Of a DNA stretch of 64,000 nucleotides, positions 5,861-36,430 are shown in pieces. Positions within the stretch are counted from its first letter, which is position 1. Each line of letters begins with the position of its first letter. Both the position numbers and the translations under genes were made by a program. The notes below the pieces were generated by a model, which ran no database searches, was not told where the DNA came from, and saw nothing but the letters and a program-made list of their open reading frames with translations. This DNA comes from Laetmonice hystrix (taxonomy: Eukaryota), in NCBI GenBank assembly GCA_965235115.1, contig OZ249438.1, positions 40,238,001 to 40,302,000 on the forward strand, in the 5' to 3' direction.

Positions 5861-5895
5861 TACGCCTAGTGTGTTTGGTCATATTGAAATTACAT

Positions 5896-9556: not shown

Positions 9557-12500
9557 ATGGAGCGTTCTCAGGGCCCAGATTACGTGAACACCAGAGACAA
9601 CGTCTATCACGACATCAAATCACCAGAGTCAGTGTCGGAATATGAAGGATATCTTCAAATCCAGCCTGAACTACCCCCTGGCCGCGAACGCACACCTCCA
9701 AATCATGTCACAGGCCTCGTTGTGGCAGAGACGGAGCGTTCCGTGACGTCACGTGGGAGGCGGGCGCCGTGGTGGGCCGTCACGCTCATCGTGATTGGTG
9801 TACTGTTACTTGCTGCCCTCATCGTCATCATCATCCTTATCGTCGGTGAGACATCCTGACAATGTCGATCACTTGTTTCTGGTCAGGGAATGCTTGACGT
9901 GAAGGGAATGTTGCCTTGATGTTTGGTTGAAGGTCATACTCGGTCTATGTTAACGGAAGGGAATGGGTCAGCCTTTAGACCGTTTATTATGTCATTAAAG
10001 GACCAGTGCAGGCCTATTCCTTTGAATGCTGTGTTGGCCCGTGCTGTAAGTCTACATCCGCACAAAACATAGATCCCCACATCAATTACGTGCATTTTTA
10101 ATGTGATATCAATATGGCTACAGGTGAGCCGGCTTGGGCCGGATATCCAGGGGGCGCCACCCTCTTCGACACGAATACACTGGTCCTTTAAACGAGCCCA
10201 ACAGTCTTTAAGGAATGGAGAAATAAACAAGCTTAGAGGAGATCACTAAATAAAAGCCTACGCAATGTTTGCTGTTTAAGTGTAGGCGTAATTTACTCGG
10301 GCACTGTGACTGGACGAACAAACCAACATTAATGAAGTGTTTTCCCTTCCACCCGGTGTCTGTTTAAAGATGGACCCCTGTCGAAGACAGAGAGGCCGAC
10401 CACACATAGGCCTACAGGTAAGGTCGCATCTATAGACCGAGAGTTAGTTTACTTCAGAAGGGTTTGGGTGGAACCCCGTACCCCCTGGATATGATGCCGT
10501 TGTAGGGCTACATAAAGTCTCCACCCTGAAATGATGTTGATCTATAGGCCTACATGTCTCCACCCTGATATGATGTAGATCTATAGGTCTACATGTCTCC
10601 ACCCTGATATGATGTTGATCTATAGGTCTACATGTCTCCGACCTGATATGATGTTGATCTATAGGTCTACATATCTCCACCCTGATATGATGTTGATCTA
10701 TAGGTCTGCATGTCTCCACCCTGATATGATGTTGATCTATAGGTCTACATATCTCCACCCTGATATGATATTGATCTATAGGTCTACATGTCTCCACCCT
10801 GATATGATGTTGATCTATAGGCATATACATGTCTCCACCCTGATATGATGTTGATGTGTACATGTCTCCACCCTGATATGATGTTGATTCACTCCAGGCC
10901 TCACCGAGGATGATGTTCACAAGGGGGTGACTACCCCCAGTTTACAGCCGTCCGCACCCCCCGAGGCCGACTATAACTGTAAGTGTCAATCTGGACCCCC
11001 AAAATATTTTTTTACTGCACTTGATCCTCCCGAAGAAATAAAGTGGATTCTACGAAGTTACTTCCCCACATTAGATGCGTGTTTGTGGTAAAACCCGTTA
11101 AGTCACAGGCCAAACCTGTCAAACTACTCTGATGTAAAACTAAAGTTTGGACTTTGCAAACCCACCATCCCACGCCAGACTCTGACATCCGTATGGCTTG
11201 TGTGTGTGTGGTCGAAATTGTCGATATCTTCAACACTTCAAAACAACTTCCGACATAGTGCTACAATGTCATACATGTTGACTATTTTAGCGACCGAGAC
11301 CTTCAGTGACCATTTCACCATGACGTCGGGAACGGGAACTAATGGATTAACTAACGTCCAAGTCTCGGCCCAAACTGCTGACGCCTGTAAAAAACGATGC
11401 GTTCTCAACGACCAGTTCTGTTACGGAGTCGACTTTAACCAAAACGCCTTAAAGTGTTGGTTGATCATGATACCCAACTACCGTGTACGGCCAATAGGTA
11501 GCGCCCCTTCCTTCACCAACTATAGACGCAGTTTGGCCGTCAGAGATGGTAAGTGTGGCGGCTACAATCATGACAAAAATACTTGATTTCACGATAGAGT
11601 GGAATTAGTCATTCAGAAATTCTTACAATTGAGATCATCCCAAAGATGTGTATGAGTCATGCAGCCAGCGTTCCGCCAGAGGGTAAAATGGGTAAAATTC
11701 CGTACCCTACGATTTTTCCAGGGTACGGATCCGTGCCCTCTAAACCGTCGGGTAACCATTTTTCCATGAAGTGATAAAAACCTCCTGATGATGCCTTGAG
11801 CAACTTGAAGGAATCAAATATAATGCAGTACAGTATATGCAGGCTTTCTTTGGTTAATTCACATATTTGTAACAGCAGTTAGGGTTAGGCTAACCCTAAC
11901 CCTAACCCCTCCTCTGGTCCGTACCCTAAATTTTGTTTCTGGCGGAAACCATGGCAGCCTATAAAATAACGGGGGGGGGGGGGGGGTTACAGCATATTCG
12001 TCAAAGATTGCCGGCCAATGGGTGAGCTCTGCGGCCACCAATGGTTTGACCACAGGCAGCCAGCTACCGGCCACTGTCACTGAACCTATACACACTGATT
12101 TGAATGATGGGCCCCTTATTATCCAGTATTGAGTCACACTTTCATAGATGTAGTTATTATTAATCTACATGTTAAGCCCCCTTTACTCACGCGATACTCT
12201 GGTTTAGTCACACTTTTATAGATGTAGTTATTATTAATCTACATGTATAGCCCCCTTTACTCACGCGATACTCTGGTTTAGTCACACTTTTATACATGTA
12301 GTTATTATTAATCTACATGTATAGCCCTCTTTACTCACGCGATACTCTGGTCTAAGTTTCATGTCGTGTAGAGCTGCTGACTGTACCTGGAAAACGAATT
12401 ATTGGAGACCACGTGACGATACGATCAGCGGTCAACACGCCGGAGCAATGTTCCAATCTCTGTCTCGGTGACCGTGGGGATGGCGTGGTCGGACCTGGAC

Positions 12501-15500
12501 GGTTCTGTTCGGCAGTGCTCTTCATACCGAGTAATGCGACAAATAGTAAACAGTGCCATATTAGCACTAGCCAGTACTACCTTACATCAAGAACGAACAG
12601 ACAAGATATTAGATTTCAAGAATTGCGCTTAGTTTGCAGTAAATCGTCATACCCGGGTAAGTAGTAGTCTATACAAACATTATAATTATATGTCCTGCTT
12701 CAGAGATAGTCCGGACAAGCGTTTCTTTCATGAGCAGATTCTCCTATCAGTTTCTGGTATGGAGTCTTCACGATCCCTTTATTGCCTGATCCCCTCAACG
12801 TCATATAGCCAGAGAGTGTACTAAACCAGCGGCTTCCGCCGCCTATGTAAACTCTCTGATATAGCCAATGCCGAAACCGGAAATAACAAGATGGACTACT
12901 TCCGCTTTGTGAATGCAATATCGCAGTCACAACAAGCGAACAAACTTGAACTAGTCATAGATCATAATCCATCCATAAATCTCAAGCAAAACACATTCTC
13001 TTGTTGGAGTTACATGTGGGTAAATGTATTAGGGTGGCATATTACCATTTCAGGATGTAGGTACCCATTTCAGAGGCGAGCCAAATATAGGATGCGTGAA
13101 AGATCCGCGGGACTAAAAAAGGAGGACGTCCCTGGTCAGACGGTTGGCGCATGCGCAGAGCGCTGTATTGGTCGTGACCCGTCTTACAAAACGCAATGTC
13201 GTGTCTTCGAATTCAACAGATCAAACAGGACATGTACTATATACATGAACACAGCGGAAAGAGCAAGACTAAGGGTTTCAGAAACTCCACTCATCGACAT
13301 CTACGAACTACCGGAAACATCTATAGACTGCAGTAAGCGTTTGAGACTGTCAAATGGGGGATTTTACTCGAATCTGATTGGTTAAGATGTATTTCAAGTC
13401 AATTAAATTTGATGTGGCTTCTGAATCGGTTCAAGACGCACCCCTGCTGTCTCAGGGACAAGCTCTATTTAAGCAATCACTGTTGATCGGCGCACGGAGA
13501 TTTTGTGAACATACAAATATATTACAAATAAATCTGTCGGGTATTCACCTACGTGAATATGACCAGTGACCTTATAACTATCTCTTCTTGCCGTCGAAAG
13601 GTAAAAAATGCCAAGAACAGGCAGGTGTGTATCAGTACCTAACCTTAAGAATTAAATGTATTCATTTACTTCACTTATTGGATGTCCCTTTCCTCCTTCT
13701 GTAGGTCCATGTATGGACCACTACAAGGCGTGGTATGACGCCAGGAGTGTGGGCAGAAGAAAACTGCAAGGGAAGTTTGTCTCCGAGTCCTGCAAACGGC
13801 GCTGTGTCAGGTATAAAGGTCGCTCTGACCGTCCAAGGGTAAAAGTTGACGAGATGTTAGATCTCTTCGGGCGAGTCCGCCGAGCGACTCTCAACTTTAC
13901 TGCCATTGCTCAGAGTTTGGTCAATGAGACGGTTGGAAGATGTTTCGGGTATGATATCACCCCGGACGGAGAATGTTACTTCAAAACTGAGGCCAGTTAC
14001 ACGTTAGAGAACGCTGTCGGCAACATGCACTTCAGTCGGCAGCCGCTCTGTGGTGGTGAGATGTTTGGGGGTTTTATGGGGTTGTTCTATTTCTACTTTG
14101 TGTGGTCGCAGGTTTGTAACTGACAGAGAGACAGAGAGCACAGCCTCTAACGGTAGAGGGACCGAACCCAGAATTTCATAAAGCAAGGGATAGGGAGGGA
14201 TAGATGACGCAGAGGTCAAGTTATTAAAGAAATTGGTACAAACCAAAGATATAAGAACTGCATGGCCCTAAAAGGGGAGAACCTGTGTTTATTTACATAA
14301 TAATGTGTGTTTTCTGTACAGAGACAGTTACCGTAGCTAGACAGCAATAGGTCCCGTACCTAACCATATAATATCGCCGTAAAGATGACCTTATACATGC
14401 CGACACAGCGGAAAGCCACACTCACACTCTCACTGTTCCTGTACAGGTTGTGGCGACCAGACCCAGTACACATCCACGGTCAACACTTGGCCCCCTGGCG
14501 GTGTAACTTTCTCTAGTAACCAGACCAGTTCCGTCTTCATGTGCGCGTCCCTCTGCCAGGGGGCGCTCGTTACGTTTACGTCGGCGCCGTGCTACGGGTT
14601 CGCCTACGACACACGACGGGGGACGTGTACTTTGTACCGGTCCTTCAGCTACGAACTGGGCCCCGTGGGGAGGGCCCCGTATGTCAACCACTACCGCCGC
14701 ATGTATACATGCCGTGAGTCTCATACTGTCTCACTAGGGTTCGGAGGAAGGGGAGGGAGAGGTATGACTCTAAAGGGGCAACAGGGGCGGATTTAGGGGG
14801 AGGCCGAGGGGGCCGCCTCCCTTCCGTCAGGGTACCAATCAGACAAAAGGCAAAATTTGTTGTCCACAACTGTAAAAGCAAACATTTTGCTTTCTCAGAA
14901 TGCAGGAAATGCCATTTCAGAGACGCTAGATGTTCAAAATTGTCTGAGGGCATGCCCCCAGACCCCGCTAGCAGGGCTCGGGCTTCGCCCTCAGGCGACC
15001 CCCCCCCCCCTCCCTTTCCAAAATTCTGGATCCGCCCCTGGGCAATAAACATCTCTTTGAGGTTAGGCTTTGTCCCCAAGAATTGAGGGTTGACATGGCT
15101 TCTGTCCATCTGACTGAATCTGGTGAGAAAAGTATAACTTTATCACTGCACTATATTACTATCGCATTTTAAAAGTAATATTGCCAATGGGGGACGAACT
15201 CCTAACCTCCAAAAATATTATTGTCATTCAGTGCATAGTGTGTGAACGGATCCCAACGGGCACGGGCAGAGCTGTTTGGATGCAGAGCATGGATTCATTG
15301 ACGTCCTTTTTCTCTGTGTTTATGTGACAGCTTCGGCAAGGTGTCTGGAGAGCTTCACAGTGACACGGAACATGAGGGGACAGGGCCGAGTCCCGCTACC
15401 AGTTGATATCGACACGATCGACAAGTGTAAGGACCAATGTCTCGGTTACCACATCGCCACGTTTGGGGGCGCCACCTGCTATGGATTCTCCTTCGACAAC

Positions 15501-15647
15501 CAGCGGACCCGTTGCCATGTCTACGTGGACAGACAGAATTCTTTGCCAACGCGAAGAGTACCAGATGTTGATACCTATCAGAGGAATATGCGCTGCTCTG
15601 AACTCACAACAACTGTTAGAGATGGAATGGATGACAAATTATTATAA
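9557..15647 (+). CDS. Paralog 1: type II transmembrane protein, Tyr-motif cytoplasmic tail + 6 PAN/Apple domains, 686 aa; join(9557..9845,11291..11548,12357..12656,13054..13332,13705..14055,14447..14713,15331..15647)
   Basis: All introns are GT-AG and phase 1; the total is 2061 nt, in frame, ending TAA. Kozak gccaagATGG with an in-frame stop 18 nt upstream. TM WWAVTLIVIGVLLLAALIVIIILIV follows RGRR. Each downstream exon has the PAN pattern C-x3-C...C-x-G/A/V-F-x-F/Y...C. The exon 3 acceptor could alternatively be 12372. Confidence 0.88.
10517..10890. repeat. 39-bp minisatellite in intron 1, ~9-10 units
   Basis: Unit tctccaccctgatatgatgttgatctataggtctacatg; present in all three paralogs. Confidence 0.95.
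11666..11953. mobile_element. CAG...-type MITE with 5-bp TSD (GCAGC), hAT5-like; shared with paralog 2 (21846-22126), absent in paralog 3
   Basis: gcagc|cagcgttccgccaga...tctggcggaaaccatg|gcagc; the empty site tcatgcagcctataaa is seen at ~32658. Confidence 0.8.
12133..12354. repeat. 74-bp x3 tandem repeat directly upstream of the exon 3 acceptor, paralog 1 only
   Basis: gtcacactt... at 12133, 12207 and 12281; single copy in paralog 2 (~22357-22430). Confidence 0.9.
14782..15040. mobile_element. CAG...CTG MITE with 5-bp TSD (GGCAA) in intron 6; also at 25356-25613 and 35574-35831
   Basis: ggcaa|caggggcggattt...ggatccgcccctg|ggcaa; present in all three paralogs, so it predates the triplication. 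Confidence 0.8.
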
Positions 15648-18042
15648 TCGTATGAGATGTTTTAATGGCGAGGCTGTCGTATGTTAGAACATGCTCCCAG
15701 CCACCTAGTGTCGTATTTAATAACTAAGACTGTCCTATGTTAAAGCAGAGCCCAGTGTCCGTCAGATGGACCATCTGATCGCTTAACGCTTAACGAAATA
15801 AAAAAAAGAATTTCATAAAAGGCTCATGTTTTTGAGAATTTTCCAGTTCCATCTGTTGGTGTTGGGAGGGGGCGTGAATGGGTTGATGGTCGGGAACTTG
15901 TGACGAGGTATTTGGAATATGTTTCTACATTTGCAACATGTAGGCCTAAAGAGAGCGCTGTACATTTCCTCCATTATATACGAGTAATGCTATAGGCTAG
16001 CCTGGAGTGGCTCTATAGGGCTAACACTATGCCTCATGTTACGGTCACCATTGATTTAGAAAAGAAATACAAACTATTGATTGACCCGATGCTCCCAGGT
16101 AGGCCTAGACATCTATAGCCTGCATAATGGGCCTACATCTAGTCACGATAGGTGTCACCTACGGGGGAGGTGGCGCCCCCTGTGGGCAATACAAAATCGC
16201 GCTTTGTCAGACTGGTTCTCGATCCCGTCGCTAGGTGGCTAGAATATTTAGACACCTAGCGACTGGATCGGGAACTACTCTCTGTGGTCTCAAAACTGAT
16301 CATTCGGGATTCCCTCGGGCATATGACGTCATTTCTGCATATACCCTCGGGTGACTTGGGCGCCATTATGGCAACAGATAGGCCTACATGGCGAAATCGA
16401 CCTGTGTAGCGAGGCACTGAGTGAACCGTCATATCCCATCGAGCCAGAAAGTAGTGCATTATTGAAACCTGCTCCTTGGCATCGTATGTGCAAATATCGG
16501 CCTAAATTTGTGGTATGAAGGGGAACGTTTGAAGAAGAAAAAGAATCACCTAGCTAATTTAGGAACAACAACGCTGCTTCTGATTGGCTGTTTCTAGGTC
16601 ATATCCGGAGGCGAAAGAGGCCACGGATCTATGAAGCGGCCATTTCCCCAAGATTTGCGGAAAATCCAGTGAAGTGGCATCGCGCATGAACACAGCAGTA
16701 AATAGGCCTAACAAGGGTGTAGCCAGGAGGGGGGGGGGGGGTCCAGGTTGCCTCCCCCCAAATAATTAATAGCTAATTAAATAACTAAATAGATCTAAAT
16801 AAATTACTAATATTATGGTTGGGAATCCCCCCCGCCATCTCAGTTGGAACTGATGTGGTAACTGATCGCTAGAAGTCCATTGCTGGTCGAGAAAGAACAT
16901 AACCATTGACCCTATTTCAGCCACTAAAAATTGCCTAGGGGGCCTACTTGGCTTCCGAGTCCCAGCAGTTGTTTTTCGTATTCCTCCAAGTTATGGTTTT
17001 TGTAATTTTTTTTTCTCAGGGATCATTTCACAGCTGTCAACCCTTAGAATGTGCTAACAGGGCCAAGAGAAAAAACATTTAGTGTTTATAACAGTGTTTA
17101 TAACTAGACCTAGGCCTATATATTTAGTTTAATATAATAACGGTGGCGCAGACAGTCCATAGGGAGCTAAGAATGCCCTTTTACTGAGAGGCGGCGGGGA
17201 TCACTGAATCATGCTTTATTGGGATCAGATTTGAAAAGTTCTCAGTTTTTCTCAGGCCGCCTCGTCGGCCTATACTGGTTTCACGACACTACTGACCTCT
17301 GGTGGTGAAATCTAGACCTGAGTTGAGACTCTCTCCGCCACCTAGTGTGGTAAACGTGAAACTGGGTGTGTTTCTCAGTCACTTAGCTTGATGTCGGCAG
17401 TGGGTCATGGGTCCCGGGAAAATACTCTGAGAAGTCAAGGTTCTTAGGCAGGGGTGGGTCCAGGGGGTCCGGACCCCCTGCTCCCAGAGAGCATTGATTT
17501 TTTTCTAAGCATTCCCGCCGTTTTGAACCCGTTGAGCTATTTTTTTCTAAGCATTCCCTCTGAAGGTGTCCCTTGCTAAACGGGGGGGGGGGGGGGGCAC
17601 AGTAGCGTCCGCACAAGAAATAAGTAACCCAGTGAGCATCTGCTAGTAGCGTCAGATGTGTAGGTGTTTGCGTGACGGTCTATTTCACAGACCCGCTACC
17701 ATTGAGGACAGAGGAACGGGCCATGGAGACGACTGCCAGGTACGTCTGTCAGCTTGCTCTCCTGTCAATCGTACGGGCGCAGTTTGTTTGTCACTATTAG
17801 ACAACAGTGGGCGATCCAGGGGGCGGGGGCAAGATTTTGATAATGGAGGGGGGGGGGGGACCAGGATTTTGATAAGGAGGGCACCTAAATCTAAATTTGA
17901 TTGTTAGTTTGAGTGTCCTCACACATGAAGTAGTCCAACTGAAGACTAAGTCAAGCGAGACGCTTGTATAACAGAATCGTGATATTGTCGCCACGGTCGG
18001 TGATGTCTTTGCGTTCACTGCGCGCGTAGAACATCTGGTTAA

Positions 18043-18570
18043 AGGGGCATACTATGAAACACGTTTTTGAGGATTTCCGGCAATTATCCAAAATGACCGT
18101 GTACTAGGGATCCAAGTAAATAATCCTACCACAGCATTTTGTCCTCCGACGTGTTTTCGCTGCGTATGCAGCACCAGTAGGTTCTATACGACCAAACCTA
18201 TAGATTTCTCCTGATAGCACATCTCCCGCCATAATTTGGCGGACAACCTCCCATCAACCCGTGTAATTGCATACTGTGTCACATCCTGTGTGTGCACTCT
18301 CTGCATGTGCTTAGTCACGTGCTTTGCTTAGTCGTAAACAATTCAGCAGTGGCACTCGATCGCCCGGCATCAGAATGCCACCCAAAAAATATTTTACGAA
18401 ATCGGCAGAGAAGCGGGCAAGGGAGCTTAATAAACTTCGATTTCTCACGCAAAATGAAACTGATAAGTCTGTCTTTGTTTACCAAGCAATTTTAATGAAG
18501 GATCTCTTTATGAAAACAGCAAAAGTTCTATGAAATACCGATTTTTAACGTTTCCTCATAATATGCCCCT
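18043..18570. mobile_element. Kolobok-like non-autonomous element (528 bp), TTAA TSD
   Basis: TTAA|aggggcatactatga...tcataatatgcccct|TTAA; 14/15 TIR match; AG...CT termini. Confidence 0.8.
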
Positions 18571-19443: not shown

Positions 19444-22400
19444 ATGGAGCGTTCTCAGAGCCCAGATTACGTGAACAGCAGAGACAACGTGTATGACGAC
19501 ATCAAATCACCAGAGTCACCAGTGTCGGAATATGAAGGATATCTTCAACTCCAACCTGAACTACCCCCTGGCCGCGAACGCACACTTCCAAATCATGTCA
19601 CTGACGACGACACGAAGCGGGAGAAGGGATATCAAGGCCTCGTTGTGGCAGAGACGGAGCGTTCCGTGACGTCACGTGGGAGGCGGGCGCCGTGGTGGGC
19701 CGTCACGCTCATCGTGATTGGTGTACTGTTACTTGCTGCCCTCATCGTCATCATCATCCTTATCGTCGGTGAGACATCCTGACAATGTCGATCACTTGTT
19801 TCTGGTCAGGGAATGCTTGACGTGTAAGGGAATGTTGCCTTGATGTTTGGTTGAGGGTCATACTCGGTCTATGTTAACGGAAGGGAATAGGTCAGCCTTT
19901 AGATCGTTTATTATGTCATTAAAGGACCAGTGCAGGCCTATTCCTTTGAATGCTGTGTTGGCCCGTGCTGTTGTGTACATCCGTACACAACATAGCTCCC
20001 CACATCAATTACGTGCATTTTTAATGTGATATCAATATGGCTATAGGTGAGCCGACTTGGGCCGGATATCCAGGGGGCGCCACCCTCTTCGACACGAATA
20101 CACTGGTCCTTTAAAGGGAGGGAAACCCCACACAGCAAATAAGGTTTCGTAGACCAAATGAAACACCAGCGTCACACATCGGGTGGTTACACGTTAATTA
20201 CTTCATTCAAACAACGTAATTGTGGCATTTATTGCCCTGGTGTAAATGCTGGTGTTTCATTTGGTCTACGAAACCTTATTTGCCGTGTGGGTTGTCCATC
20301 CCTATAAACGAGCCCAACAGTCTATAAGGAATGGAGAAATAAACAAGCTTAGCGGAGATCACTAGATAAAGGCGTATACCAATCTACGCATATGAAATGT
20401 TAGCTGGTTATGTGTAGGCGTAATTTACTCGGGCACTGTGACTGGACGAACAAATCAACAATAATGAAGTGTTTTCCCTTCCACCCGGTGTCTGTTTAAA
20501 GGTGGACCCCTGTCCAGGACGGAACCGGAGAGTCAGACCACACATAGGCCTACAGGTAAGGTCGCATCTATAGACCGAGATGGTGAGTTTACTTCATAAG
20601 GGTTTGTGTGCAACCCAGTAACACCCTGGATATGATGCCGTTGTAGGGCTACATAAAGTCTCCACCCTGAAATGATGTTGATCTATAGGTCTACATGTCT
20701 CCACCCTGATATGATGTTGATCTATAGGTCTACATGTCTCCGCCCTGATATGATGTTGATCTATATGTGTACATATCTCCACCCTGATATGATGTTGATC
20801 TATAGGTCTACATGTCTCCGACCTGATATGATGTTGATCTATAGGTCTACATATCTCCACCCTGATATGATGTTGATCTATAGGTCTGCATGTCTCCACC
20901 CTGATATGATGTTGATCTATAGGTCTACATATCTCCACCCTGATATGATATTGATCTATAGGTCTACATGTCTCCACCCTGATATGATGTTGATCTATAG
21001 GCATATACATGTCTCCACCCTGATATGATGTTGATGTGTACATGTCTCCACCCTGATATGATGTTGATTCACTCCAGGCCTCACCGAGGATGATGTTCAC
21101 AAGGGGGTGACTACCCCCAGTTTACAGCCGTCCGCACCCCCCGAGGCCGACTATAACTGTAAGTATCAATCTGGACCCCCAAAATATTTTTTTACTGCAC
21201 TTGATCCTCCCGAAGAAATAAAGTGGATTCTACGAAGTTACTTCCCCACATTAGATGCGTGTTTGTGGTAAAAACCGTTAAGTCACAGGCCAAACCTGTC
21301 AAACTACTCTGATGTAAAACTAAAGTTTGGACATTGCAAACCCACCATCCCACGCCAGACTCTGACATCCGTATGGCTTGTGTGTGTGTGGTCGAAATTG
21401 TCGATATCTTCAACACTTCAAAACAACTTCCGACATAGTGCTACAATGTCATACATGTTGACTATTTTAGCGACCGAGACCTTCAGTGACCATTTCACCA
21501 TGACGTCGGGAACGGGAACTAATGGATTAACTAACGTCCAAGTCTCGGCCCGAACTGCTGACGCCTGTAAAAAACGATGCGTTCTCAACGACCAGTTCTG
21601 TTACGGAGTCGACTTTAACCAAAACACCTTAAAGTGTTGGTTGATCCTGATACCCAACTACCGTGTACGGCCAATAGGTAGCGCCCCTTCCTTCACCAAC
21701 TATAGACGCAGTTTGGCTGTCAGAGATGGTAAGTGTGGCGGCTACATGACAAAAATACTTGATTTCACGATAGAGTGGATGGGATTAGTCATTCAGAAAT
21801 TCTTACAATTGAGATCATCCCAAAGATGTGTATGAGTCATGCCGCCAGGGTTCCGCCAGAGGGTAAAGTGGGTAAAATTCCGTACCCTAAATTTTTTCTA
21901 GGGTACGGATCCGTGCCCTCTAATCCGTTGGGTAACCATTTTTCCATGAAGTGATAAAAACCTCCTGATGATGCCTTGAGCAACTTGAAGGAATCAAATA
22001 TAATGCAGTACAGTATATGCAGGCTTTCTTTGGTTAATTCACATATTTGTAACAGCAGTTAGGGTTAGGCTAACCCTAACCCCTCCTCTGGTCCGTGCCC
22101 TAAATTTTTTTCTGGCGGAAACCCTGGCAGCCTAGAAATATATTCGTCAATATTCGTCAACGATTGCCGTGACCACAGGCAGCCAGCTGCCGGCCACTGT
22201 CACTGAACCTATACACACTGATTTGAATGACGGGCCCCTCATTGGCCAGTATTGAGCCAACCCCCACCGCTAACGGGACCCCGCCCCGGGCTGACGTAAA
22301 CGCGGACAGACTGTGAAAGGTCACTCAGATACAGTGCAATCACCACCCCCTATTCAGAGTCACACTTTTATACATGTAGTTATTATTAATCTACATGTAT

Positions 22401-25400
22401 ATCCCCCTTTACTCACGAGATATTCTGGTTTAAGTTTCATGTCGTGTAGAGCTGCTGACTGTACCTGGAAAACGAATTATTGGAGACCACGTGACGATAC
22501 GATCAGCGGTCAACACGCCGGAGCAATGTTCTAATCTCTGTCTCGGTGACCGTGGGGATGGCGTGGTCGGACCTGGACGGTTCTGTTCGGCAATGGTCTT
22601 CGTACCGAGTAATGGGACAAATAGTAGACAGTGCCATATCAGCACTAGCCAGTACTACAGCACAGCGAGAACAAACAGACGAGATATTAGATTTCAAGAA
22701 TTGCGCTTAGTTTGCAGTAAATCGTCATACCCGGGTAAGTAGTCGTCTATACAAACATTATAATTATATGCTCTGCTTCAGAGATAGTCCGGACAAGCGT
22801 TTCTTTCATGAGCAGATTCTCCTATCAGTTTCTGGTATGGAGTCTTCACGATCCCTTTATTGCCTGATCCCCTCAACGTCATATAGCCAGAGAGTGTACT
22901 AAACCAGCGGCGGCGGAACAGATAATATATTGGGGGGGGGGGGCACTTCCGCCGCCTATGTAAACTCTCTGATATAGCCAATGCCGAAACCGGAAATAAG
23001 ATGGACTACTTCCGCTTTGTGAATGCAATGTCTCAGTCACAAAAAGTGAACAAACTTGAACTAGTCATAGATCATAATCCATTCATAAATCTCAAGCACA
23101 ACACATTTTGTTGTTAGAGTTACACGTGGGCCAAATGTATTACAGTGGTATATCACAATTTCAGGATGTAGGTACCCATTTCAGAGGCGAACCATGCATA
23201 GGATGAGTGATAGATCCGTGAGACTAAAAAAGGAGGACGTCCCTGTTGAGACGGTTGGCGCATGCGCAGAGCGCTGTATCGGTCGTGACCCGTCTTACAA
23301 AACGCAATGTCGTGTCTTCGAATTCAACAGATCAAACAGGACATGTACTATATACATGGCCACAGCGGAAAAAGCCACTCCAAGACCAGGGGTTTCAAAA
23401 ACTCCACTCAACATCGACATCTACATACTACCGAAAACATCTATAGACTGCAGTAAGCGTTTGAGACTGTCAAATGGGGGATTTTACTCGAATCTGATTG
23501 GTTAAGATGTATTTCAAGTCAATTAAATTTGACGTGGCTTCTGAATCGGTCCAAGACGCACCCCTGCTGTCTCAGGGACAAGCTCTATTTAAGCAATCAA
23601 TGTTGATCGGCGCACGGAGATTTTGTGAACATAAAAATATATTACAAATAAATCTGTCGGGTATTCATATATATGACCAGAATATGACCAGTGACCTTAT
23701 ATCTATCTCTTCTTGCCGTAGAAAGGTAAAAAATGCCAAGAACAGGCAGGTGTGTATACCTAACCTTAAGAATCGCTGTGCCGAATTACAACCTTTAAAG
23801 GCAGGGTAAACACCCACGGCAAATAAGGTTTCGTAGGCCAAATGAAACATCAGCATTTACCTCAGGGCAATAAATGCCACAATTACGCTGTCTGAATGAA
23901 GTAATTAACGTGTAACCGCCCGATGTATGACGCCGCTGGTTCTTACCTTGACCTTCTTGTGTGTTCATCACAACCGAATGCTGCACACCGCAGCCTATTG
24001 TGTAACATTACGTGTTACTCTGTTCACAGACCTTGTCTACACGATGTTTGGAGTCCTAACGTTTGTAAACGTCCGAGGTGTTGAACACTAAAAGCAGAAC
24101 CAGTTGCATCACACATCGGGCAGTTACACATTAATTACTTCATTCAGACAACGTAATTGTGTCATTTATTGTCCTGGCGTTTCATTTGGCCTACGAAACC
24201 TTACTTGCCGTGGGTGTTTACCCTGCCTTTAAATGTATTCATTTCCTTCACTTATTGGATGTCCCTTTCCTCCTTCTGTAGGTCCATGTATGGACCACTA
24301 CAAGGCGTGGTATGACGCCAGGAGTGTGGGCAGAAGAAAACTACAAGGGCGGTTGGTCTCGAGGAGCTGCAAACGGCGCTGTGCCTGGTATAACGGTCGC
24401 TCTGACCGTCCAAGGGTGAACGTTGACGACATCTTAGACCTCTTCGGGCGAGTCCGCCGAGCGACTGTCAACTTTACTACCATTGCTCGGAGTTTGGTCA
24501 ATGAGACGGTTGGAAGATGTTTCGGGTATGATATCACCCCGGACGGAGAATGTTACATCAAAACTGAGGCCAGTTACACGTTAGAGAACGCTGTCGGCAA
24601 CATGCACTTCAGTAGGCAGCCGCTCTGTGGTGGTGAGATGTTTGGGGGTTTTATGGGGTTGTTCTATTTCTACTTTGTGTGGTCGCAGGTTTCTAACTGA
24701 CAGAGAGACAGAGAGCACAGCCTCTAACGGTAGAGGGACCGAACCCAGAATTTCATAAAGCAAGGTCCGAGAGGGATAGATGACGCAGAGTTTAAGTTAT
24801 TAAAGGAATTGGTAGAAACCAAAGATATAAGAAATGCATGGCCCTAAAATGGGAGAACCTGTGTTTATTTACATAATAATGTGTGTTTTCTGTACAGAGA
24901 CAGTTACCGTAGCTAGACATCAATAGGTCCCGTACCTAACCATGTAATATCGCCGTAAAGATGACCTTATACATGGCGACACAGCGGAAAGCCACACTCA
25001 CTCACTCACTGTTCCTGTACAGGTTGTGGCGACCAGACCCAGTACACATCCACGGTCAACACTTGGCCCCCTGGCGGTGTAACGTTCTCTAGTAACCAGA
25101 CCAGTTCCGTCTTCATGTGCGCGTCCCTCTGCCAGGGGGCGCTCGTTACGTTTACGTCGGCGCCGTGCTACGGGTTCGCCTACGACACACGACGGGGGAC
25201 GTGTACTTTGTACAGGTCCTTCAGCTACGAACTGGGCCCCGTGGGGAGGGCCCCGTATGTCAACCACTACCGCCGCATGTATACATGTCGTGAGTCTCAT
25301 ACTGTCTCTCTAGGGGTCGGAGGGGGGAGGGAGAAATATGACTCTAAAGGGGCAACAGGGGCGGATTTAGGGGGGAGGCCGAGGGGGCCGCCCCCCTTTC

Positions 25401-26212
25401 GTCAGGGTACCAATCAGACAAAAGGCAAAATTTGTTGTCCACAACTGTAAAAGCAAGCATTTTGCTTTCTCAGAATGCAGGAAATGCCATTTCAGAGACG
25501 CTAGATGTTCAAAATTGTCTGAGGGCATGCCCCAGACCCCGCTAGCAGGGCTCGGGCTTCACCCTCGGGCGACCGCCCCCTCCCCCCTTTCAAAAATCCT
25601 GGATCCGCCCTTGGGCAATGAAAATCTCTTTGAGGTTAGGCTTTGTCCCCAAGAATTGAGGGTTGACATGGCTTCTGTCCATCTGACTGAATCTGGTGAG
25701 AAAAGTATAACTTTATCACTGCACTATATTACTATCGCATTTTGAAGTAATATTGCCAATGGGGGACGAACTCCTAACCTCCAAGAATATTATTGTCATT
25801 CAGTGCATAGTGTGTGAACTGATCCCAACGGGCACGGGCAGAGCTGTTCTCTCATGGATTCATTGACGTCCTTTTTCTCTGTGTTTATGTGACAGCTTCG
25901 GCAAGGTGTCTGGAGAGCTTCACAGTGACACGGAACATGAGGGGACAGGGCCGAGTCCCGCTACCAGTTGATATCGACACGATCGACAAGTGTAAGGACC
26001 AATGTCTCGGTTACCACATCGCCACGTTTGGGGGCGCCACCTGCTATGGATTCTCCTTCGACAACCAGCGGACCCGTTGCCATGTCTACATGGACAGACA
26101 GAATTCTTTGCCAACGCGAAGAGTGCCAGATGTTGATACCTATCAGCGGAATATGCGCTGCACTGAACTCACAACGACTGTTAGAGATGGAATGGATGAC
26201 AAATTATTATAA
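19444..26212 (+). CDS. Paralog 2: type II TM protein with 6 PAN/Apple domains, 701 aa; join(19444..19768,21471..21728,22435..22734,23165..23452,24282..24632,25023..25289,25896..26212)
   Basis: Same exon structure as paralog 1; phase-1 GT-AG introns; 2106 nt in frame with no premature stop. Confidence 0.88.
20115..20303. mobile_element. Kolobok-like hairpin MITE (189 bp), paralog 2 intron 1 only
   Basis: TTAA|agggaggg...aataaggtttcgtagaccaaatgaaacaccagc...gctggtgtttcatttggtctacgaaaccttatt...catccct|ATAA; empty site cctttaaacgagc at ~10186. Confidence 0.8.
20658..21070. repeat. 39-bp intron-1 minisatellite, paralog 2, ~10-11 units
   Basis: Same unit as 10517-10890 with a nearly identical variant order. 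Confidence 0.95.
23799..24228. mobile_element. Kolobok-like MITE (430 bp), same family as 20115-20303, paralog 2 intron 4 only
   Basis: TTAA|aggcagggtaaacacccacggcaaataaggtttcgtaggccaaatgaaac...tttcatttggcctacgaaaccttacttgccgtgggtgtttaccctgcct|TTAA; empty site caacttttaaatgtattc at ~34465. Confidence 0.85.
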
Positions 26213-28171: not shown

Positions 28172-28742
28172 CAGATGTGTAGGTGGTTGTGTAGATGTGT
28201 AGGTGCCAGTCTGTCACACAGACCTGCCACAGTTAGGCCTACAGTGAGGACGTGGTCCTGTGTCTGGTAGATGTGTAGGTGGTTGCGTGCCAGTCTGTCA
28301 CACAGACCTGCCACAGTTACAGTGAGGACGTGGTCCTGGGTCTGGTAGATGTGTAGGTGGTTGTGTGCCAGTCTGTCACACAGACCTGCCACAGTTACAG
28401 TGAGGACGTGGTCCTGTGTCTGGTAGATGTGTAGGTGGTTGCGTGCCAGTCTGTCACACAGACCTGCCACAGTTACAGTGAGGACGTGGTCCTGTGTCTG
28501 GTAGATGTGTAGGTGGTTGCGTGCCAGTCTGTCACACAGACCTGCCACAGTTACAGTGAGGACGTGCTGGTCCTGGGTCTGGTAGATGTGTAGGTGGTTG
28601 TGTGCCAGTCTGTCACACAGACCTGCCACAGTTACAGTGAGGACGTGCTGGTCCTGGGTCTGGTAGATGTGTAGGTGGTTGCGTGCCAGTCTGTCACACA
28701 GACCTGCCACAGTTACAGTGAGGACGTGGTCCTGGGTCTGGT
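28172..28742. repeat. 78-bp (some 81-bp) minisatellite, ~7 units, upstream of paralog 3
   Basis: gtctggtagatgtgtagg... at 28262, 28340 and 28418; single diverged homologs at ~5120-5200 and ~17655-17720. Confidence 0.93.
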
Positions 28743-29758: not shown

Positions 29759-32700
29759 ATGGAGCGTTCTCAGGCCCGAAATGACGTGAACAGCAAAGAG
29801 AACGTTTATGAGGATATCAAATCACCAGAACCACCCGTGTCGGAATATGAAAGATATCTTCAACTCGAGCCAGAGCATGCCTACCACAACGCTTCACCTA
29901 AACTTCCCCCTGCCCGCGAACGCACACTTCCAAATTATGTCACTGACGACGACACGAAGCGGGAGAAGGGATATCAAGACCTCGTTGTGGCAGAGACGCA
30001 GCGTTCCGTGACGTCACTTAGGAGGCGGGCGCCGTGGTGGGCCGTCACGCTCATCGTGATTGGTGTACTGTTACTTGCTGCCCTCATCGTCATCATCATC
30101 CTTATCGTCGGTGAGACATCCTGACAATGTCGATCACTCGTTTCTGGTCAGAGAATGCTTGACGTCTAAGGGAATGTTGCCTTGATGTTTGGTTGAGGGT
30201 CATACGTAAACGGAAGGGAATGGGTCAGCCTTTAGATCCTTTATTATGTCATTAAACCAGCCCAACATTAAGGAACGGAGAAATAAACAAGCTTAGAGGA
30301 GATCACTAGATAAAGGCCTATGCCATATAGGCCTACGCATATGAAATGTTTGCTGTTTAGGTGTAGGCGTAAGTTAATCGGGCACTGTGACGAAGAAATC
30401 AACGAAGAAATCAACAATAATGAAGTGTTTTCCCTTCCACCCGGTGTCTGTTTAAAGGTGGACCCCTGTCCAGGACGGAACCGGAGAGTCAGACCACACA
30501 TAGGCCTACAGGTAAGGTCGCATCTGTAGACCGAGATGGTGAGTTTACTTCATAAAGGTGTGTGTGCAACCCCGTAACACCCTGGATATGATGCCGTTGT
30601 AGGGCTACATAAAGTCTTCACTCTGAAATGATGTTGATCTATAGGTCTACATGTCTCCACCCTGATATGATGTTGATCTATAGGTGTACATGTCTCCACC
30701 CTGATATGATGTTGATCTATAGGTGTACATGTCTCCACCCTGATATGATGTTGATCTATAGGTGTACATGTCTCCACCCTGATATGATGTTGATCTATAG
30801 GTGTACATGTCTCCACCCTGATATGATGTTGATCTATAGGTGTACATGTCTTCGCCCTGATATGATGTTGATCTATAGGTCTACATGTCTCCGCCCTGAT
30901 ATGATGTTGATCTATAGATCTACATGTCTCCACCCTGATATGATGTTGATCTATAGGTCTACATGTCTCCGCCCTGATATGATGTTGATCTATAGGTCTA
31001 CATGTCTCCACCCTGATATGATGTTGATCTATAAGTGTACATATCTCCACCCTGATATGATGTTGATCTATAGGTCTAGGCCTACATGTCTCCACCCTGA
31101 TATGATGTTGATCTATAGATCTACATGTCTCCGCCCTGATATGATGTTGATCTATAGGTCTACATGTCTCCACCCTGATATGATGTTGATCTATACGTCT
31201 ACATGTCGCCACCCTGATATGATGTTGATTCACTCCAGGCCTCACCGTGGACGATGTTCACAAGGGGGTGACTACCCCCAGTTTTCAGCCGCCCGCACCC
31301 CCCGAGGCGGACTCGTCTGTCTATAACTGTTAGTATCAATCTGGACCCCCCCCCCCCCCCAAAAAAAAAGAAGTGGATTCTACGAAGTTACTTCCCTATA
31401 TTAGATGCGTGTTTGTGGTAAAACTAGTTAAGTCACAGGCCAAACCTGTTAAACTTGTCAGTGTGCTCTTTACAAGCCCACCATCCCACGCCAGAATGTA
31501 CACTCTAACGCTGGTATGGTTGGTACTTGTGTGTGTTCTGAGAGGTAAAACTAAAGTTTAGACTTTACAAGCCCACCATCCCACGCCAGAATGTAGACTC
31601 TAACGCTGGTATGGCTGGTACTTGTGTGTGTTCTGAGAGGTAAAACTAAAGTTTAGACTTTACAAGCCCACCATCCCACGCCAGAATGCACACTCTAACG
31701 CTGGTATGGTTGGTACTTGTGTGTGTTCTGAGAGGTACAACTAAAGTTTAGACTTTACAAGCCCACCATCCCACGCCAGAATGTAGACTCTAACGCTGGT
31801 ATGGCTGGTACTTGTGTGTGTTCTGGGAGGTAAAACTAAAGTTTAGACTTTACAAGCCCACCATCCCACGCCAGAATGTAGACTCTAACGCTGGTATGGC
31901 TGGTACTTGTGTGTGTTCTGAGAGGTAAAACTAAAGTTTAGACTTTACAAGCCCACCATCCCACGCCAGAATGTACACTCTAACGCTGGTATGGCTGGTA
32001 CTTGTGTGTGTTCTGAGAGGTAAAACTAAAGTTTAGACTTTACAAGCCCACCATCCCACGCCAGAATGTAGACTCTAACGCTGGTATGGCTGGTACTTGT
32101 GTGTGTTCTGAGAGGTAAAACTAAAGTTTAGACTTTACAAGCCCACCATCCCACGCCAGAATGTACACTCTAACGCTGGTATGGCTGGTACTTGTGTGTG
32201 TTCTGAGAAGCGGTGAAATTTTCACATATTCAGCCACTTTGGGTTGAAAGATCAAAAATTGCCGATACACTTCAAAACAACTTCCCACATAGTGCTAAAT
32301 GTTGATTATTTTAGTGACCGAGACCTTCAGTGACCATTTCACCATGACGTCTGGAACCAGGACACTGCGAGTACCTAACGTCCAAGTCTCGGCCCAAACT
32401 GTTGACGTCTGTAAGAAACGCTGCATTCTCAATGACCAGTTCTGTTACGGGGTCGACTTCAACAATAAGACTGGAAAGTGTCGGCTAATCATTACACCTA
32501 ACTACCGCGTACGGCTAATAGGTAGCGCCCTTTTTTTCGACAATTACAGACGAAGTTTGGCCGTCAGAGAAGGTAAGTGTGGCAGCTACATGAGAAAAAA
32601 AGAGTGGAATTGGTCATTCAGAAATGCATACAATTGAGATCATCTCAAGGATATGTATGAGTCATGCAGCCTATAAAATAAAGTGTGTGGGGGCTTTATG

Positions 32701-35700
32701 AGCATTCCAGTCAAAGATCGGGTATATACCGTAACTCCCTGTCTGAGAAAGGTCACTCAGAGACAGTGTAGTCACCGCCCCCTATTCTAATTCATAGTCA
32801 CACTGTTACATTTGTAGTTATTATTCATATCTACAGTGTAGTCACCGCCCCCTATTCTAATTCATAGTCACACTGTTACATTTGTAGTTATTATTCATAT
32901 CTACATGTTATTGTAGCCCCTTTACTCACGCGATACTCTGGTTTAAGTTTCCTGTCGTGTAGAGCTGCTGACTGTACCTGGAAAACGAATTATTGGAGAC
33001 CACGTGACGATACGATCAGCGGTCAACACGCCGGAGCAATGTTCCAATCTCTGTCTCGGTGACCGTGGGGATGGCGTGGTCGGACCTCGACAGTTCTGTT
33101 CGGCAGTGGTCTTCATACCGAATAGAAATAGTAAACGGTGCCTTATCAGCACTCGCCAGTACTACAGCACATCGAGAACAAACAGACAAGATATTAGATT
33201 TCAAGAATTGCGCTTAGTTTGCAGTAAATCGTCATACCCGGGTAAGTAGTCGTCTATACAAACATTATATGTTCTGCTTCAGAGATAGTCCGGGCAAGAT
33301 TTTCTTTCATGAGCAGATTCTCCATCAAATTAATGGACAAAATGTTAGCCTCTCCAAAAATGGGAACGTGTCCTATTTTGGGACACTTAGCATACTTGAA
33401 TTAAATAGGCCTAATCAGTCTGTGGTATGGAGTCTTCACGATCCCTTTATGTCTATTGCCTGATCCCCTCGACGTCATATAGCCAGAGTTTAGGCCTACT
33501 ACACTCTCTGATATAGCCATGCCAAAAACAAGTAACAAGATGGACTACTTCCGCTTTGTGAATGCAATGTCGCAGTCACAAAAAGCGAACAAACTTGAAC
33601 CAGTCATAGATCTTACAGAAAACACCCAATCCATAAATCTCAAGCACAACACATTTTCTCACAATTTGTTAGAGTTACACGTGGGCCAAATGTATTACAG
33701 TGGCATATCACAATTTCAGGATGTAGGTACCCATTTCAGAGGCGAGCCAAATATAGGATGAGTGATAGATCCGTGGGACTAAAAAAGGAAGACGTCCCTG
33801 TTGAGACGGTTGGCGCATGCGCAGAGCGCTGTATCGGTCGTGACCCGTCTTACAAAACGCAATGTCGTGTCTTCGAATTCAACAGATCAAACAGGACATG
33901 TACTATATACATGAACACAGCGGAAAAAGCCACTCCAAGACTAAGGGTTTCAAAAACTCCACTCAACATCGACATCTACGAACTACCGAAAACATCTATA
34001 GACTGCAGTAAGCGTTTGAAACTGTCAAATGGGGGATTTTACTCGAATCTGATTGGTTAAAATGTATTGCAAGTCTATAGCGCTAATCAGCAGAGGCTAA
34101 AATTACTAAAAAATAGTACAAAGTAGGACAGACAGTACAGGTGAATAAATAGTGTTTGTCCCACCGATGACGTCTTCACTGACAAAATATGTTATTAAAT
34201 TTGACATGACTTTGCTTGTCAATCGGTTCAAGACGCAGCCCTGCTGTCTCAGGAACAAGCTCTATTTAAGCAATCAATGTTGATCGGCGCACGGAGATTT
34301 TGTGAACATACAAATATATTACAAATAAATCTGTCGGGTATTCACCTACGAGAATATGACCAGTGACCTTATAACTATCTCTTCTTGCCGTCGAAAGGTA
34401 AAAAATGCCAAGAACAGGCAGGTGTGTATCAGTACCTAACCTTAAGAATCGCTGTGCCGAAATACAACTTTTAAATGTATTCATTTCCTTCACTTATTGG
34501 ATGTCCCTTTCCTCCTCCTGTAGGTCCATGTATAGACCACTACAAGGCGTGGTATGACGCCAGGAGTGTGGGCAGAAGAAAACTACAAGGGAAATTGGTC
34601 TCCGAGACCTGCAAACGGCGCTGTGCCCGGTATAAAGGTCGCTCTGACCGTCCAAGGGTGAACGTTGACGAGATGTTAGATCTCTTCGGGCGAGTCCGCC
34701 GAGCGACTCTCAACTTTACTGCCATTGCTCAGAGTTTGGTCAATGAGACGGTTGGAAGATGTTTCGGGTATGATATCACCCCGGACGGAGAATGTTACAT
34801 CAAAACTGAGGCCAGTTACACGTTAGAGAACGCTGTCGGCAACATGCACTTCAGTCGGCAGCCGCTCTGTGGTGGTGAGATGTTTGGGGTTTTATGGGGT
34901 TGTGGTCGCAGGTTTCTAACTGACAGAGAGACAGAGAGCACAGCCTCTAACGGTAGAGGGACCGAACCCAGAATTTCATAAAGCAAGGTCCGAGAGGGAT
35001 AGATGACGCAGAGTTTAAGTTATTAAAGGAATTGGTAGAAACCAAAGATATAAAAAATACATGGCCCTAAAGGGGAGATCCTGTGTTTATTTACATAATA
35101 ATGTGTGTTTTCTGTACAGAGACAGTTACCGTAGCTAGACAGCAATAGGTCCCGTACCTAACCATGTAATATCGCCGTAAAGATGACCTTATACATGGCG
35201 ACACAGCGGAAAGCCACACTCACTCACTGTTCCTGTACAGGTTGTGGCGACCAGACCCAGTACACATCCACGGTCAACACTTGGCCCCCTGGCGGTGTAA
35301 CGTTCTCTAGTAACCAGACCAGTTCCGTCTTCATGTGCGCGTCCCTCTGCCAGGGGGCGCTCGTTACGTTTACCTCGGCGCCGTGCTACGGGTTCGCCTA
35401 CGACACACGACGGGGGACGTGTACTTTGTACAGGTCCTTCAGCTACGAACTGGGCCCCGTGGGGAGGGCCCCGTATGTCAACCACTACCGCCGCATGTAT
35501 ACATGTCGTGAGTCTCATACTGTCTCTCTAGGGGTCGGAGGGGGGAGGGAGAAATATGACTCTAAAGGGGCAACAGGGGCGGATTTAGGGGGGAGGCCGA
35601 GCGGGCCGCCCCCCTTTCGTCAGGGTACCAATCAGACAAAAGGCAAAATTTGTTGTCCACAAATGTAAAAGCAAGCATTTTGCTTTCTCAGAATGCAGGA

Positions 35701-36430
35701 AATGCAATTTCAGAGACGCTAGATGTTCAAAATTGTCTGAGGGCATGCCCCAGACCCCGCTAGCAGGGCTCGGGCTTCACCCTCGGGCGACCGCCCCCTC
35801 CCCCCTTTCAAAAATCCTGGATCCGCCCTTGGGCAATGAAAATCTCTTTGAGGTTAGGCTTTGTCCCCAAGAATTGAGGGTTGACATGGCTTCTGTCCAT
35901 CTGACTGAATCTGGTGAGAAAAGTATAACTTTATCACTGCACTATATTACTATCGCATTTTGAAGTAATATTGCCAATGGGGGACGAACTCCTAACCTCC
36001 AAAAATATTATTGTCATTCAGTGCATAGTGTGTGAACGGATCCCAACGGGCACGGGCAGAGCTGTTCTCTCATGGATTCATTGACGTCCTTTTTCTCTGT
36101 GTTTATGTGACAGCTTCGGCAAGGTGTCTGGAGAGCTTCACAGTGACACGGAACATGAGGGGACAGGGCCGAGTCCCGCTACCAGTTGATATCGACACGA
36201 TCGACAAGTGTAAGGACCAATGTCTCGGTTACCACATCGCCACGTTTGGGGGCGCCACCTGCTATGGATTCTCCTTCGACAACCAGCGGACCCGTTGCCA
36301 TGTCTACATGGACAGACAGAATTCTTTGCCAACGCGAAGAGTGCCAGATGTTGATACCTATCAGAGGAATATGCGCTGCACTGAACTCACAACGACTGTT
36401 AGAGATGGAAGGGATGACAAATTATTATAA
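29759..36430 (+). CDS. Paralog 3: type II TM protein with 6 PAN/Apple domains, 708 aa; join(29759..30110,32315..32572,32948..33241,33720..34007,34524..34874,35241..35507,36114..36430)
   Basis: Same exon structure; phase-1 GT-AG introns; 2127 nt in frame; coding indels versus paralogs 1 and 2 are all multiples of 3. Confidence 0.88.
30614..31230. repeat. 39-bp intron-1 minisatellite, paralog 3, ~16 units
   Basis: Same 39-bp unit, longer array. Confidence 0.95.
31468..32208. repeat. 95-bp minisatellite, ~8 units, intron 1 of paralog 3 only
   Basis: gactttacaagcccaccatcccacgccaga... at 31561, 31656 and 31751; single diverged seed at ~11135-11210 and ~21315-21390. Confidence 0.93.
32764..32905. 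repeat. 70-bp direct duplication in intron 2 of paralog 3
   Basis: cagtgtagtcaccgccccc... at 32764 and 32834. Confidence 0.85.

Follow-up and report, generated by a model that had tools for sequence, protein, structure and literature searches.

Three tandem genes of Laetmonice hystrix encode predicted type II membrane proteins with six PAN/Apple domains and a conserved ITAM-consensus tail

We analysed a stretch of 64,000 nucleotides (nt) from Laetmonice hystrix (contig OZ249438.1, positions 40,238,001 to 40,302,000, forward strand), hereafter the window, which contains a cluster of three genes, g1, g2 and g3, whose products combine a tyrosine-rich N-terminal tail, one hydrophobic helix and six PAN/Apple domains. 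These are transcribed, lineage-restricted and recently duplicated genes with a conserved consensus of the immunoreceptor tyrosine-based activation motif (ITAM) in the tail. That g1-3 are a real family of type II six-PAN membrane proteins we regard as very likely. How such proteins might work is a separate matter and is weighed at the end of this report. All positions without a chromosome label refer to the window.

Gene models, splicing and divergence of the cluster

Self-comparison of the window revealed three head-to-tail copies with a period of approximately 10 kb and DNA identities of 88-97%, and no further copy or stray exon was found elsewhere in it. A first-pass annotation, prepared from the DNA letters before the present work, had described three intact tandem genes, and this description holds: the reading frames of g1, g2 and g3 are all intact, 27 of 27 exons are open, GT-AG sites are canonical and exons are in phase 1. 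Its count of seven exons per gene, however, has to be replaced by nine coding exons. Models built from sequence only, i.e., an ATG exon and six open exons selected by phase-1 GT-AG sites, gave seven exons and proteins of 681, 696 and 703 amino acids; spliced contigs of sequencing run X4, described below, add two stalk exons and move the acceptor of the PAN2 exon, giving proteins of 729, 746 and 756 amino acids. The features of the cluster are as follows.

Gene g1: 9557..15647 (+), nine coding exons, 729 amino acids, open frame, GT-AG, phase 1
Gene g2: 19444..26212 (+), nine coding exons, 746 amino acids, junctions transferred from g1 with 0-2 mismatches, intact frame
Gene g3: 29759..36430 (+), nine coding exons, 756 amino acids, intact frame
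Exon 1 (+), tail and signal-anchor helix: g1 9557-9845; g2 19444-19768; g3 29759-30110
ITAM-consensus stretch (+), by regular-expression match and shuffle test: g1 9605..9661; g2 19492-19551; g3 29807-29866
Transmembrane helix (+), by Kyte-Doolittle: g1 9770..9844 (residues 72-96); g2 19693-19767; g3 30035-30109
Stalk exon 1b (+), phase 1-1, in frame: g1 10370-10417 (48 nt); g2 20502-20555 and g3 30458-30511 (54 nt each)
39-nt intronic tandem repeat between the stalk exons (no strand), by Tandem Repeats Finder: g1 10517..10888; g2 20658-21068; g3 30614-31229
Stalk exon 1c (+), Pro/Thr/Ser-rich: g1 10898-10978 and g2 21078-21158 (81 nt); g3 31239-31328 (90 nt)
PAN1 exon (+), four-cysteine type: g1 11291-11548; g2 21471-21728; g3 32315-32572
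PAN2 exon (+): g1 12357-12656; g2 22435-22734; g3 32948-33241
PAN3 exon (+): g1 13054-13332; g2 23165-23452; g3 33720-34007
PAN4 exon (+): g1 13705-14055; g2 24282-24632; g3 34524-34874
PAN5 exon (+): g1 14447-14713; g2 25023-25289; g3 35241-35507
PAN6 exon with stop codon (+), membrane-distal domain: g1 15331-15647; g2 25896-26212; g3 36114-36430

Exon 1 of g1 starts with an ATG that has an in-frame stop 15 nt upstream (open frame from 9542) and ends in a phase-1 donor, G/gtgaga. The stop lies downstream of a good acceptor at 9519, probably that of a 5' untranslated exon, which argues against a hidden upstream exon encoding a signal peptide.

Four public runs hold DNA of the cluster (X1-X4), all from one sample and none labelled RNA, and the read evidence consists of contigs only. 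Runs X1-X3 cover introns and contain no splice joints, while X4, the smallest, contains six. Four of these are bounded by GT..AG as printed; in the other two a few letters lie between the two sides and match the g2/g3 copies at predicted exon ends. In g1 coordinates the joints are 10417>10898, 10978>11291, 11548>12357, 14055>14447 and 14713>15331. One contig spanning 10895-10978 (exon 1c) is joined on both sides, another has the end of exon 1 spliced to 23 letters of a stalk exon that are present only in g2 and g3, and a third of 1192 nt represents PAN4-PAN5-PAN6 with both introns removed and the g3 letter at 7/7 copy-diagnostic sites. The splice order is exon 1, the 48/54-nt exon, the 81/90-nt exon and PAN1, and joint 11548>12357 places the PAN2 acceptor 15 nt further upstream than first modelled, at 12357 (g1), 22435 (g2) and 32948 (g3), which adds the first cysteine of that domain. 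At 97% likeness the contigs link exon 1 to PAN2 and PAN4 to PAN6, leaving the PAN2-PAN3 and PAN3-PAN4 joints without cover. At least g3 and one copy of the g1/g2 type are transcribed. The first-pass annotation had stated beforehand that a lack of spliced transcripts, or an exon 1 unjoined to the PAN exons, would speak against its proposal, and the joints of X4 show the opposite on both counts.

The copies are young, with a synonymous divergence (dS) of 0.05-0.10 and an overall ratio of nonsynonymous to synonymous divergence (dN/dS) of 0.5-0.7. PAN5 and PAN6, the membrane-distal domains in the predicted topology, show nearly no amino-acid change (dN ~0), with no amino-acid difference at all in PAN5 among the three copies, and PAN2-4 and the tail are more variable. 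The earlier description of the copies as diversifying is not supported: dN/dS approaches 2 in PAN2-3, but on the basis of 2-5 synonymous changes, counts too small to establish positive selection. PAN1 of g3 (32315-32572) differs from its g1 and g2 counterparts much more strongly than the remaining exons do (dS 0.41-0.44 vs at most 0.17), which suggests either a mosaic origin of this exon or gene conversion among the others. The intronic 39-nt repeat also differs between copies, with 9.6 units in g1, 10.6 in g2 and 15.6 in g3; long open reading frames (ORFs) over it, on both strands, were rejected as artefacts of the repeat. Other tandem repeats of the cluster, intergenic or intronic, lie at 28188-28742 (78 nt), 31468-32208 (95 nt), 9000-9258 (63 nt) and 12132-12351 (74 nt), and of these the 95-nt array is found in g3 only, in its third intron.

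PAN domains, membrane topology and the tyrosine tail

The six PAN exons proposed earlier are supported, five of them by Pfam PAN_1 and the fourth by cysteine register and fold. Among the large exons of g1, five of the six score above the PF00024 PAN_1 cut-off of 21.4 bits (range 23.4-30.5): PAN1 with 25.3 bits (E 1.4e-5), PAN2 with 26.3, PAN3 with 30.3, PAN5 with 23.4 and PAN6 with 30.5. Four core cysteines are invariant across 23 sequences (alignment A1), and the subfamily carries the signature [DN]-x-Y-[RK]-R before the last cysteine. The structure model of PAN6 (predicted local distance difference test, pLDDT, 82; predicted template-modelling score, pTM, 0.72) has top 50 matches in the Protein Data Bank (PDB) that are essentially all PAN/Apple domains, including the HGF N domain (E 8.6e-4), leech anti-platelet protein (the best template-modelling score, TM-score, at 0.57/0.65), plasminogen, factor XI apple domains and apicomplexan lectins. 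Profile score (PAN4 excepted), cysteine framework and fold thus agree on PAN/Apple membership.

The PAN4 exon has no Pfam match. Its six cysteines are nonetheless in register and invariant in alignment A2, where an insert of approximately 31 residues follows the helix and separates the third cysteine from the fourth, and hhalign matches the exon to a profile built from the remaining PAN exons (E 1.8e-5). The modelled core has a pLDDT of 85-96 (insert <50), and its nearest solved folds are all PAN/Apple (HGF N domain, plasminogen, FXI apple), all at E >0.07. By alignment and predicted fold, PAN4 is a PAN domain with an insert.

Ahead of these domains, Kyte-Doolittle profiles and residue counts confirm the earlier observations that there is no signal peptide, that the tail is tyrosine-rich and that basic residues precede a 25-residue uncharged helix. 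The first 19 residues are hydrophilic (Kyte-Doolittle -1.7 to -1.85), without any N-terminal hydrophobic segment, and the helix forms the single hydrophobic peak of g1-3 (the only one >1.6; maximum 3.7). The tail ahead of it comprises 71, 83 or 92 residues with 4-6 tyrosines and ends in SRGRRAP or SLRRRAP directly N-terminal of the helix. C-terminal of the helix there are 34 cysteines and 7 N-glycosylation sequons, compared with 0 cysteines and 0-1 sequon before it; in g1 and g2 all 7 sequons are C-terminal. PAN domains are extracellular, disulphide-bonded modules, and for this reason a cytoplasmic N-terminus is the only sensible reading. We therefore strongly infer a type II (signal-anchor), single-pass topology, a well-supported prediction that agrees with the layout first proposed: no signal peptide, one signal-anchor helix and every cysteine on its C-terminal side.

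The tail was searched with the ITAM consensus Yxx[LI]-x6-12-Yxx[LI], applied to the cytoplasmic segment. Each tail of the cluster fits Yxx[LI]-x11/12-Yxx[LI] with acidic residues ahead of the tyrosines, as YHDI-x11-YLQI in g1 (residues 17-35), YDDI-x12-YLQL in g2 and YEDI-x12-YLQL in g3, and these motifs sit 36-70 residues from the membrane. The consensus arises in 0.4-0.9% of shuffles per tail (P 0.004-0.009). It is present in g1, g2, g3 and two deeply diverged relatives introduced below, gP (two pairs) and gQ, so that at the level of sequence the tail deserves the name ITAM-like that it was given at the outset. An alignment of the five tails has as its invariant positions M1, E2, two tyrosines and one threonine only, the M-E start of g1-3 being common to the distant relatives.

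Further tyrosine motifs vary between the copies. The tails of g2 and g3 have an extra stretch in which an acidic triplet is followed by YQ[GD]L, a hemITAM-like arrangement (19600-19630; 29880-29970); another insert, of 9 residues and containing a YxN site, occurs in g3 only, and a YVN near the N-terminus of g1 and g2 is lost in g3. A Pfam PRIMA1 match to exon 1 was rejected, at 20 bits against a cut-off of 38.6, as helix similarity only.

Relatives, a candidate ITAM-reading kinase and database searches

Searching the genome with exon 1 gave one distant match (E 1e-5), 18 Mb away on the same chromosome, and a search with exon 1 of the gene found there gave in turn a weak match on C13 (E 0.09). 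These searches, together with SH2 and tyrosine-kinase profile searches of the genome, led to the following loci.

Paralogue gP: C3:21957500-21965073 (-), exon 1 and six PAN exons collinear with g1-3
Gene gQ: C13:13892500-13900020 (-), tail and helix exon, then five SRCR exons
Shark-type kinase gene: C10:15733900-15742200 (+), order SH2, ankyrin repeats, SH2, tyrosine kinase
Second SH2-plus-kinase locus, a possible twin or duplicate of the Shark-type gene: C10:11252300-11254800 (-)

The gP protein is 36-37% identical to g1-3 overall, has two overlapping ITAM-consensus pairs in its tail (YDDI-x11-YTAI and YTAI-x9-YEHI) and is without the insert of approximately 31 residues in PAN4. Exon 1 of gQ has an M-E-D start, four tyrosines in acidic contexts (including YTKI-x7-YETI), a similar helix and the same phase-1 G/gtgag donor, and 5/5 exons downstream of it pass Pfam SRCR (E 1e-19 to 1e-24). 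Smith-Waterman scores between the whole exons 1 of g3, gP and gQ exceed those of every one of 1000 randomisations, each of which permuted the tail and the helix independently. From its sequence gQ appears to be a type II receptor with SRCR domains that has the signalling cassette in common with the PAN genes, and we read these exons as probably one tail and anchor exon common to receptors with different ectodomains, the homology of gQ being the weakest link. A profile search found no further family member in the genome; a sixth tail-like match, on C2, has basic residues after the helix, is hence type I-like, and was set aside.

Shark-type kinases are known invertebrate readers of ITAMs. The gene on C10 has FLVR in both of its SH2 domains, and its presence makes a Shark-dependent pathway possible for these receptors. 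Comparison of a kinase exon with PDB sequences does not separate kinase subfamilies. Other candidates were rejected: the best tandem-SH2 locus considered as Syk (C1:49.03 Mb) is Csk with a duplicated SH2 exon, and three further tandem-SH2 loci have no kinase within 25-30 kb. The adjacent, similar SH2 exons of the Csk-like gene (C1:49029435-49034063, +) may be mutually exclusive alternatives or a tandem exon duplication.

Beyond the genome, a HMMER scan of 1.8 billion representatives with PAN6 as query gave 10 matches at E <=0.001, eight of which are single-exon fragments of 78-149 amino acids with at most 43% identity. The other two, both weak, do not share the layout: one of 1,721 amino acids begins with a signal-peptide-like segment, contains long 'VTVTIGDNGKVEVPYKQKETP' repeats and has its membrane anchor at the C-terminus, and one of 774 amino acids consists of PAN-like repeats in series. 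No relatives were returned when exon 1 of g3 or of gP served as the query in word-indexed searches, and the ESM Atlas gave no usable match. Two contigs from another organism (ENA ERZ25767047) have PAN exons and no tail/helix exon within 10 kb, one of them being a giant PAN array, and were likewise rejected as relatives. On a 20-kb contig of ERZ25767047, nearly identical exons that each encode one PAN domain form a long array and have the [DN]-x-Y-[RK]-R signature ahead of their last cysteine, and this PAN subfamily has therefore been amplified in more than one species. The suggestion that the architecture had not been described before is in keeping with our protein and full-text literature searches, which found neither this architecture nor a well-known family with it, using single-exon queries in collections where spliced eukaryotic proteins are poorly represented.

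Two neighbours of the cluster are recorded here for completeness. Downstream, an ORF at 46342-46752 (+) starts with a signal-peptide-like segment and encodes MNNL, the N-terminal domain of Notch ligands (Pfam E 3e-21); it is the first exon of a Delta/Serrate-type gene, and an assembly gap (N) at 45700-45854 lies just upstream of it. At 5650-6480 (+), a 276-amino-acid ORF without a Pfam match appears by eye to be a retroelement fragment, and short elements similar to it, containing 'GGGG/PPPP', recur in introns across the window.

Candidate function and its alternatives

Judged by likeness to characterised systems, the nearest functional counterparts may be the Syk-coupled type II C-type lectin-like receptors and the Draper/Shark pair, and by fold the PAN/Apple superfamily. 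Like Dectin-1 and CLEC-2 of vertebrates, g1-3 would be single-pass type II proteins whose short N-terminal tail has its own tyrosine motif in an acidic context and whose recognition domains follow a stalk, and in both cases the genes lie in tandem clusters. There is no sequence relationship, however: Dectin-1 and CLEC-2 have one C-type lectin-like domain and a single hemITAM, whereas g1-3 have six PAN/Apple domains and a two-tyrosine ITAM consensus, and Syk-type coupling is here putative. The class A scavenger receptors (SR-A, MARCO, SCARA5) are also type II, with an N-terminal tail and membrane-distal, C-terminal cysteine-rich domains, and the SRCR domain of this class occurs on the related tail/helix exon of gQ. 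They differ from g1-3 in lacking an ITAM and in having a collagenous or coiled-coil region, and their domain is SRCR rather than the PAN of g1-3 and gP. Every ectodomain exon of g1-3 is PAN or stalk with no Pfam lectin match, and neither SRCR nor collagen repeats occur in g1-3 or gP, SRCR being confined to gQ. As the defining domains are absent, g1-3 fall outside the lectin and scavenger-receptor families.

The engulfment receptors Draper/CED-1/MEGF10, with the kinase Shark in Drosophila, are invertebrate-type counterparts in another respect, i.e., a receptor with its own ITAM, a long spacer between the ITAM tyrosines and additional tail tyrosines outside the motif. For the tandem-SH2 kinase Shark to bind Draper directly, Y934 and Y949, 15 residues apart, are needed (PMC6219719). 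The same tyrosine-tyrosine distance is found in g1 (Y17/Y32) and gP (Y7/Y22), and the genome that carries these genes also has one for a Shark-type SH2-ankyrin-SH2 kinase. Unlike g1-3, Draper has the type I orientation, with its tail at the C-terminus, and contains EMI/EGF repeats; it has no homology to g1-3. With PAN/Apple proteins, e.g., HGF and plasminogen N domains, factor XI, prekallikrein, leech anti-platelet protein, MIC4, SML-2 and plant S-receptor kinases, the cluster shares fold and cysteine pattern, and tandem strings (four domains in factor XI, six in MIC4) and glycan or protein binding are known among them. The animal and apicomplexan examples differ in being secreted or type I, and the plant receptors in being type I with a kinase domain. 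We know of no PAN/Apple protein that is type II with a tyrosine-motif tail.

Taken together, we infer a signalling receptor as the best-supported reading, one to which, as a complete mechanism, we give somewhat less than an even chance. The 71-92 N-terminal residues would be cytoplasmic, anchored by the 25-residue helix, with a short Pro/Thr-rich stalk and six disulphide-bonded PAN/Apple domains outside. The PAN string would bind a multivalent ligand, either a glycan or a protein, carried by a microbe, a dying cell or the matrix, and the resulting clustering would allow a Src-family kinase to phosphorylate the two tail tyrosines, whose acidic contexts and spacing match the ITAM consensus. The doubly phosphorylated motif could then recruit the tandem SH2 domains of a Shark/Syk-type kinase, which would drive engulfment or cell activation. 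The pattern-recognition or phagocytic role suggested in the first-pass annotation is a putative one.

Several points weigh against this mechanism. X4, the run with the spliced contigs, is not recorded as RNA. Conservation of the motif rests on paralogues within the genome, no relative in other species having been found, and the tails alone are weakly similar (P ~0.05 for two pairs). In the MAFFT alignment the second invariant tyrosine of g1-3 belongs to YE[GR]Y rather than YxxL, and the consensus pair uses the tyrosine three residues further on. The positive-inside bias of g1-3 is modest, with 4 basic residues before the helix vs 2-3 after it. Finally, Yxx[LI] also reads as YxxPhi, the sorting signal for AP-2, and these residues would suit an endocytic role as well.

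The last point leads to the strongest alternative, an endocytic, scavenger-type uptake receptor in which the tail tyrosines serve mainly as YxxPhi signals for AP-2/clathrin and the PAN string captures ligand without kinase signalling. Every conserved motif also fits YxxPhi (YHDI, YLQI, YTAI, YEHI, YTKI, YETI), and the related tail/helix exon on the five-SRCR gene gQ recalls the class A scavenger receptors, which are endocytic as well as type II. A single YxxPhi suffices for sorting, however, whereas these genes conserve two motifs at ITAM spacing whose contexts are strongly acidic, as is typical of kinase substrates, and the distance of the motifs from the membrane (36-70 residues) also counts against it. 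Uptake is moreover compatible with signalling, as Dectin-1 and Draper both signal and internalise, and as a replacement for signalling we consider it unlikely, though deserving of attention. A little less likely, though also a live alternative, is a structural role in adhesion, with six PAN domains tethering the cell to collagen, cuticle or other matrix and tail tyrosines linking to the cytoskeleton or adhesion turnover. In its favour, the best TM-score of the PAN6 model (0.57/0.65) is to leech anti-platelet protein, a collagen-binding annelid PAN protein, and PAN5-6 are near-invariant among copies, which is what binding to an unchanging partner of the animal itself would lead one to expect. 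The PAN proteins known from matrix are, though, secreted or type I with ZP or VWA partner domains, neither of which occurs in g1-3, a conserved ITAM-spaced tyrosine pair is unexpected in a passive anchor, and tandem copies whose membrane-proximal domains vary are seen more typically among recognition receptors.

That the cluster is non-functional, i.e., an assembly duplication, a set of pseudogenes or an exon 1 drawn from another transcript, is largely refuted and has only a very slight probability left. Copy identity of up to 97% and the lack of a run labelled RNA would be expected under such an origin. Yet all 27 exons are open with canonical splice sites, the copies differ in tail indels and repeat number, spliced contigs with copy-specific letters link exon 1 to downstream exons, dN/dS is <1 overall with dN ~0 in PAN5-6, and the whole architecture is kept in gP, a paralogue of 37% identity.

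The signalling reading can be extended to the whole set of related genes. The lineage may have built self-signalling type II immune receptors by phase-1 shuffling of an ITAM tail/anchor exon onto six PAN domains (four genes) or five SRCR domains (one gene), all acting via the Shark-type kinase. This wider proposal is speculative, and we think it doubtful rather than probable. Receptors with their own ITAM are at the core of vertebrate cellular immunity, and to our knowledge few are known in protostomes, with Draper the main case. If correct, these genes would be a protostome counterpart of the Dectin-1 logic that arose independently, in which PAN/Apple domains take on such a receptor role for the first time. 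They would also illustrate cleanly how a signalling cassette can be moved by exon shuffling, and would place the PAN fold in a membrane-receptor setting that is new for it. The PAN family and its SRCR sister gene would then be concrete candidates for comparative immunology, and for understanding how lophotrochozoan phagocytes recognise their targets.

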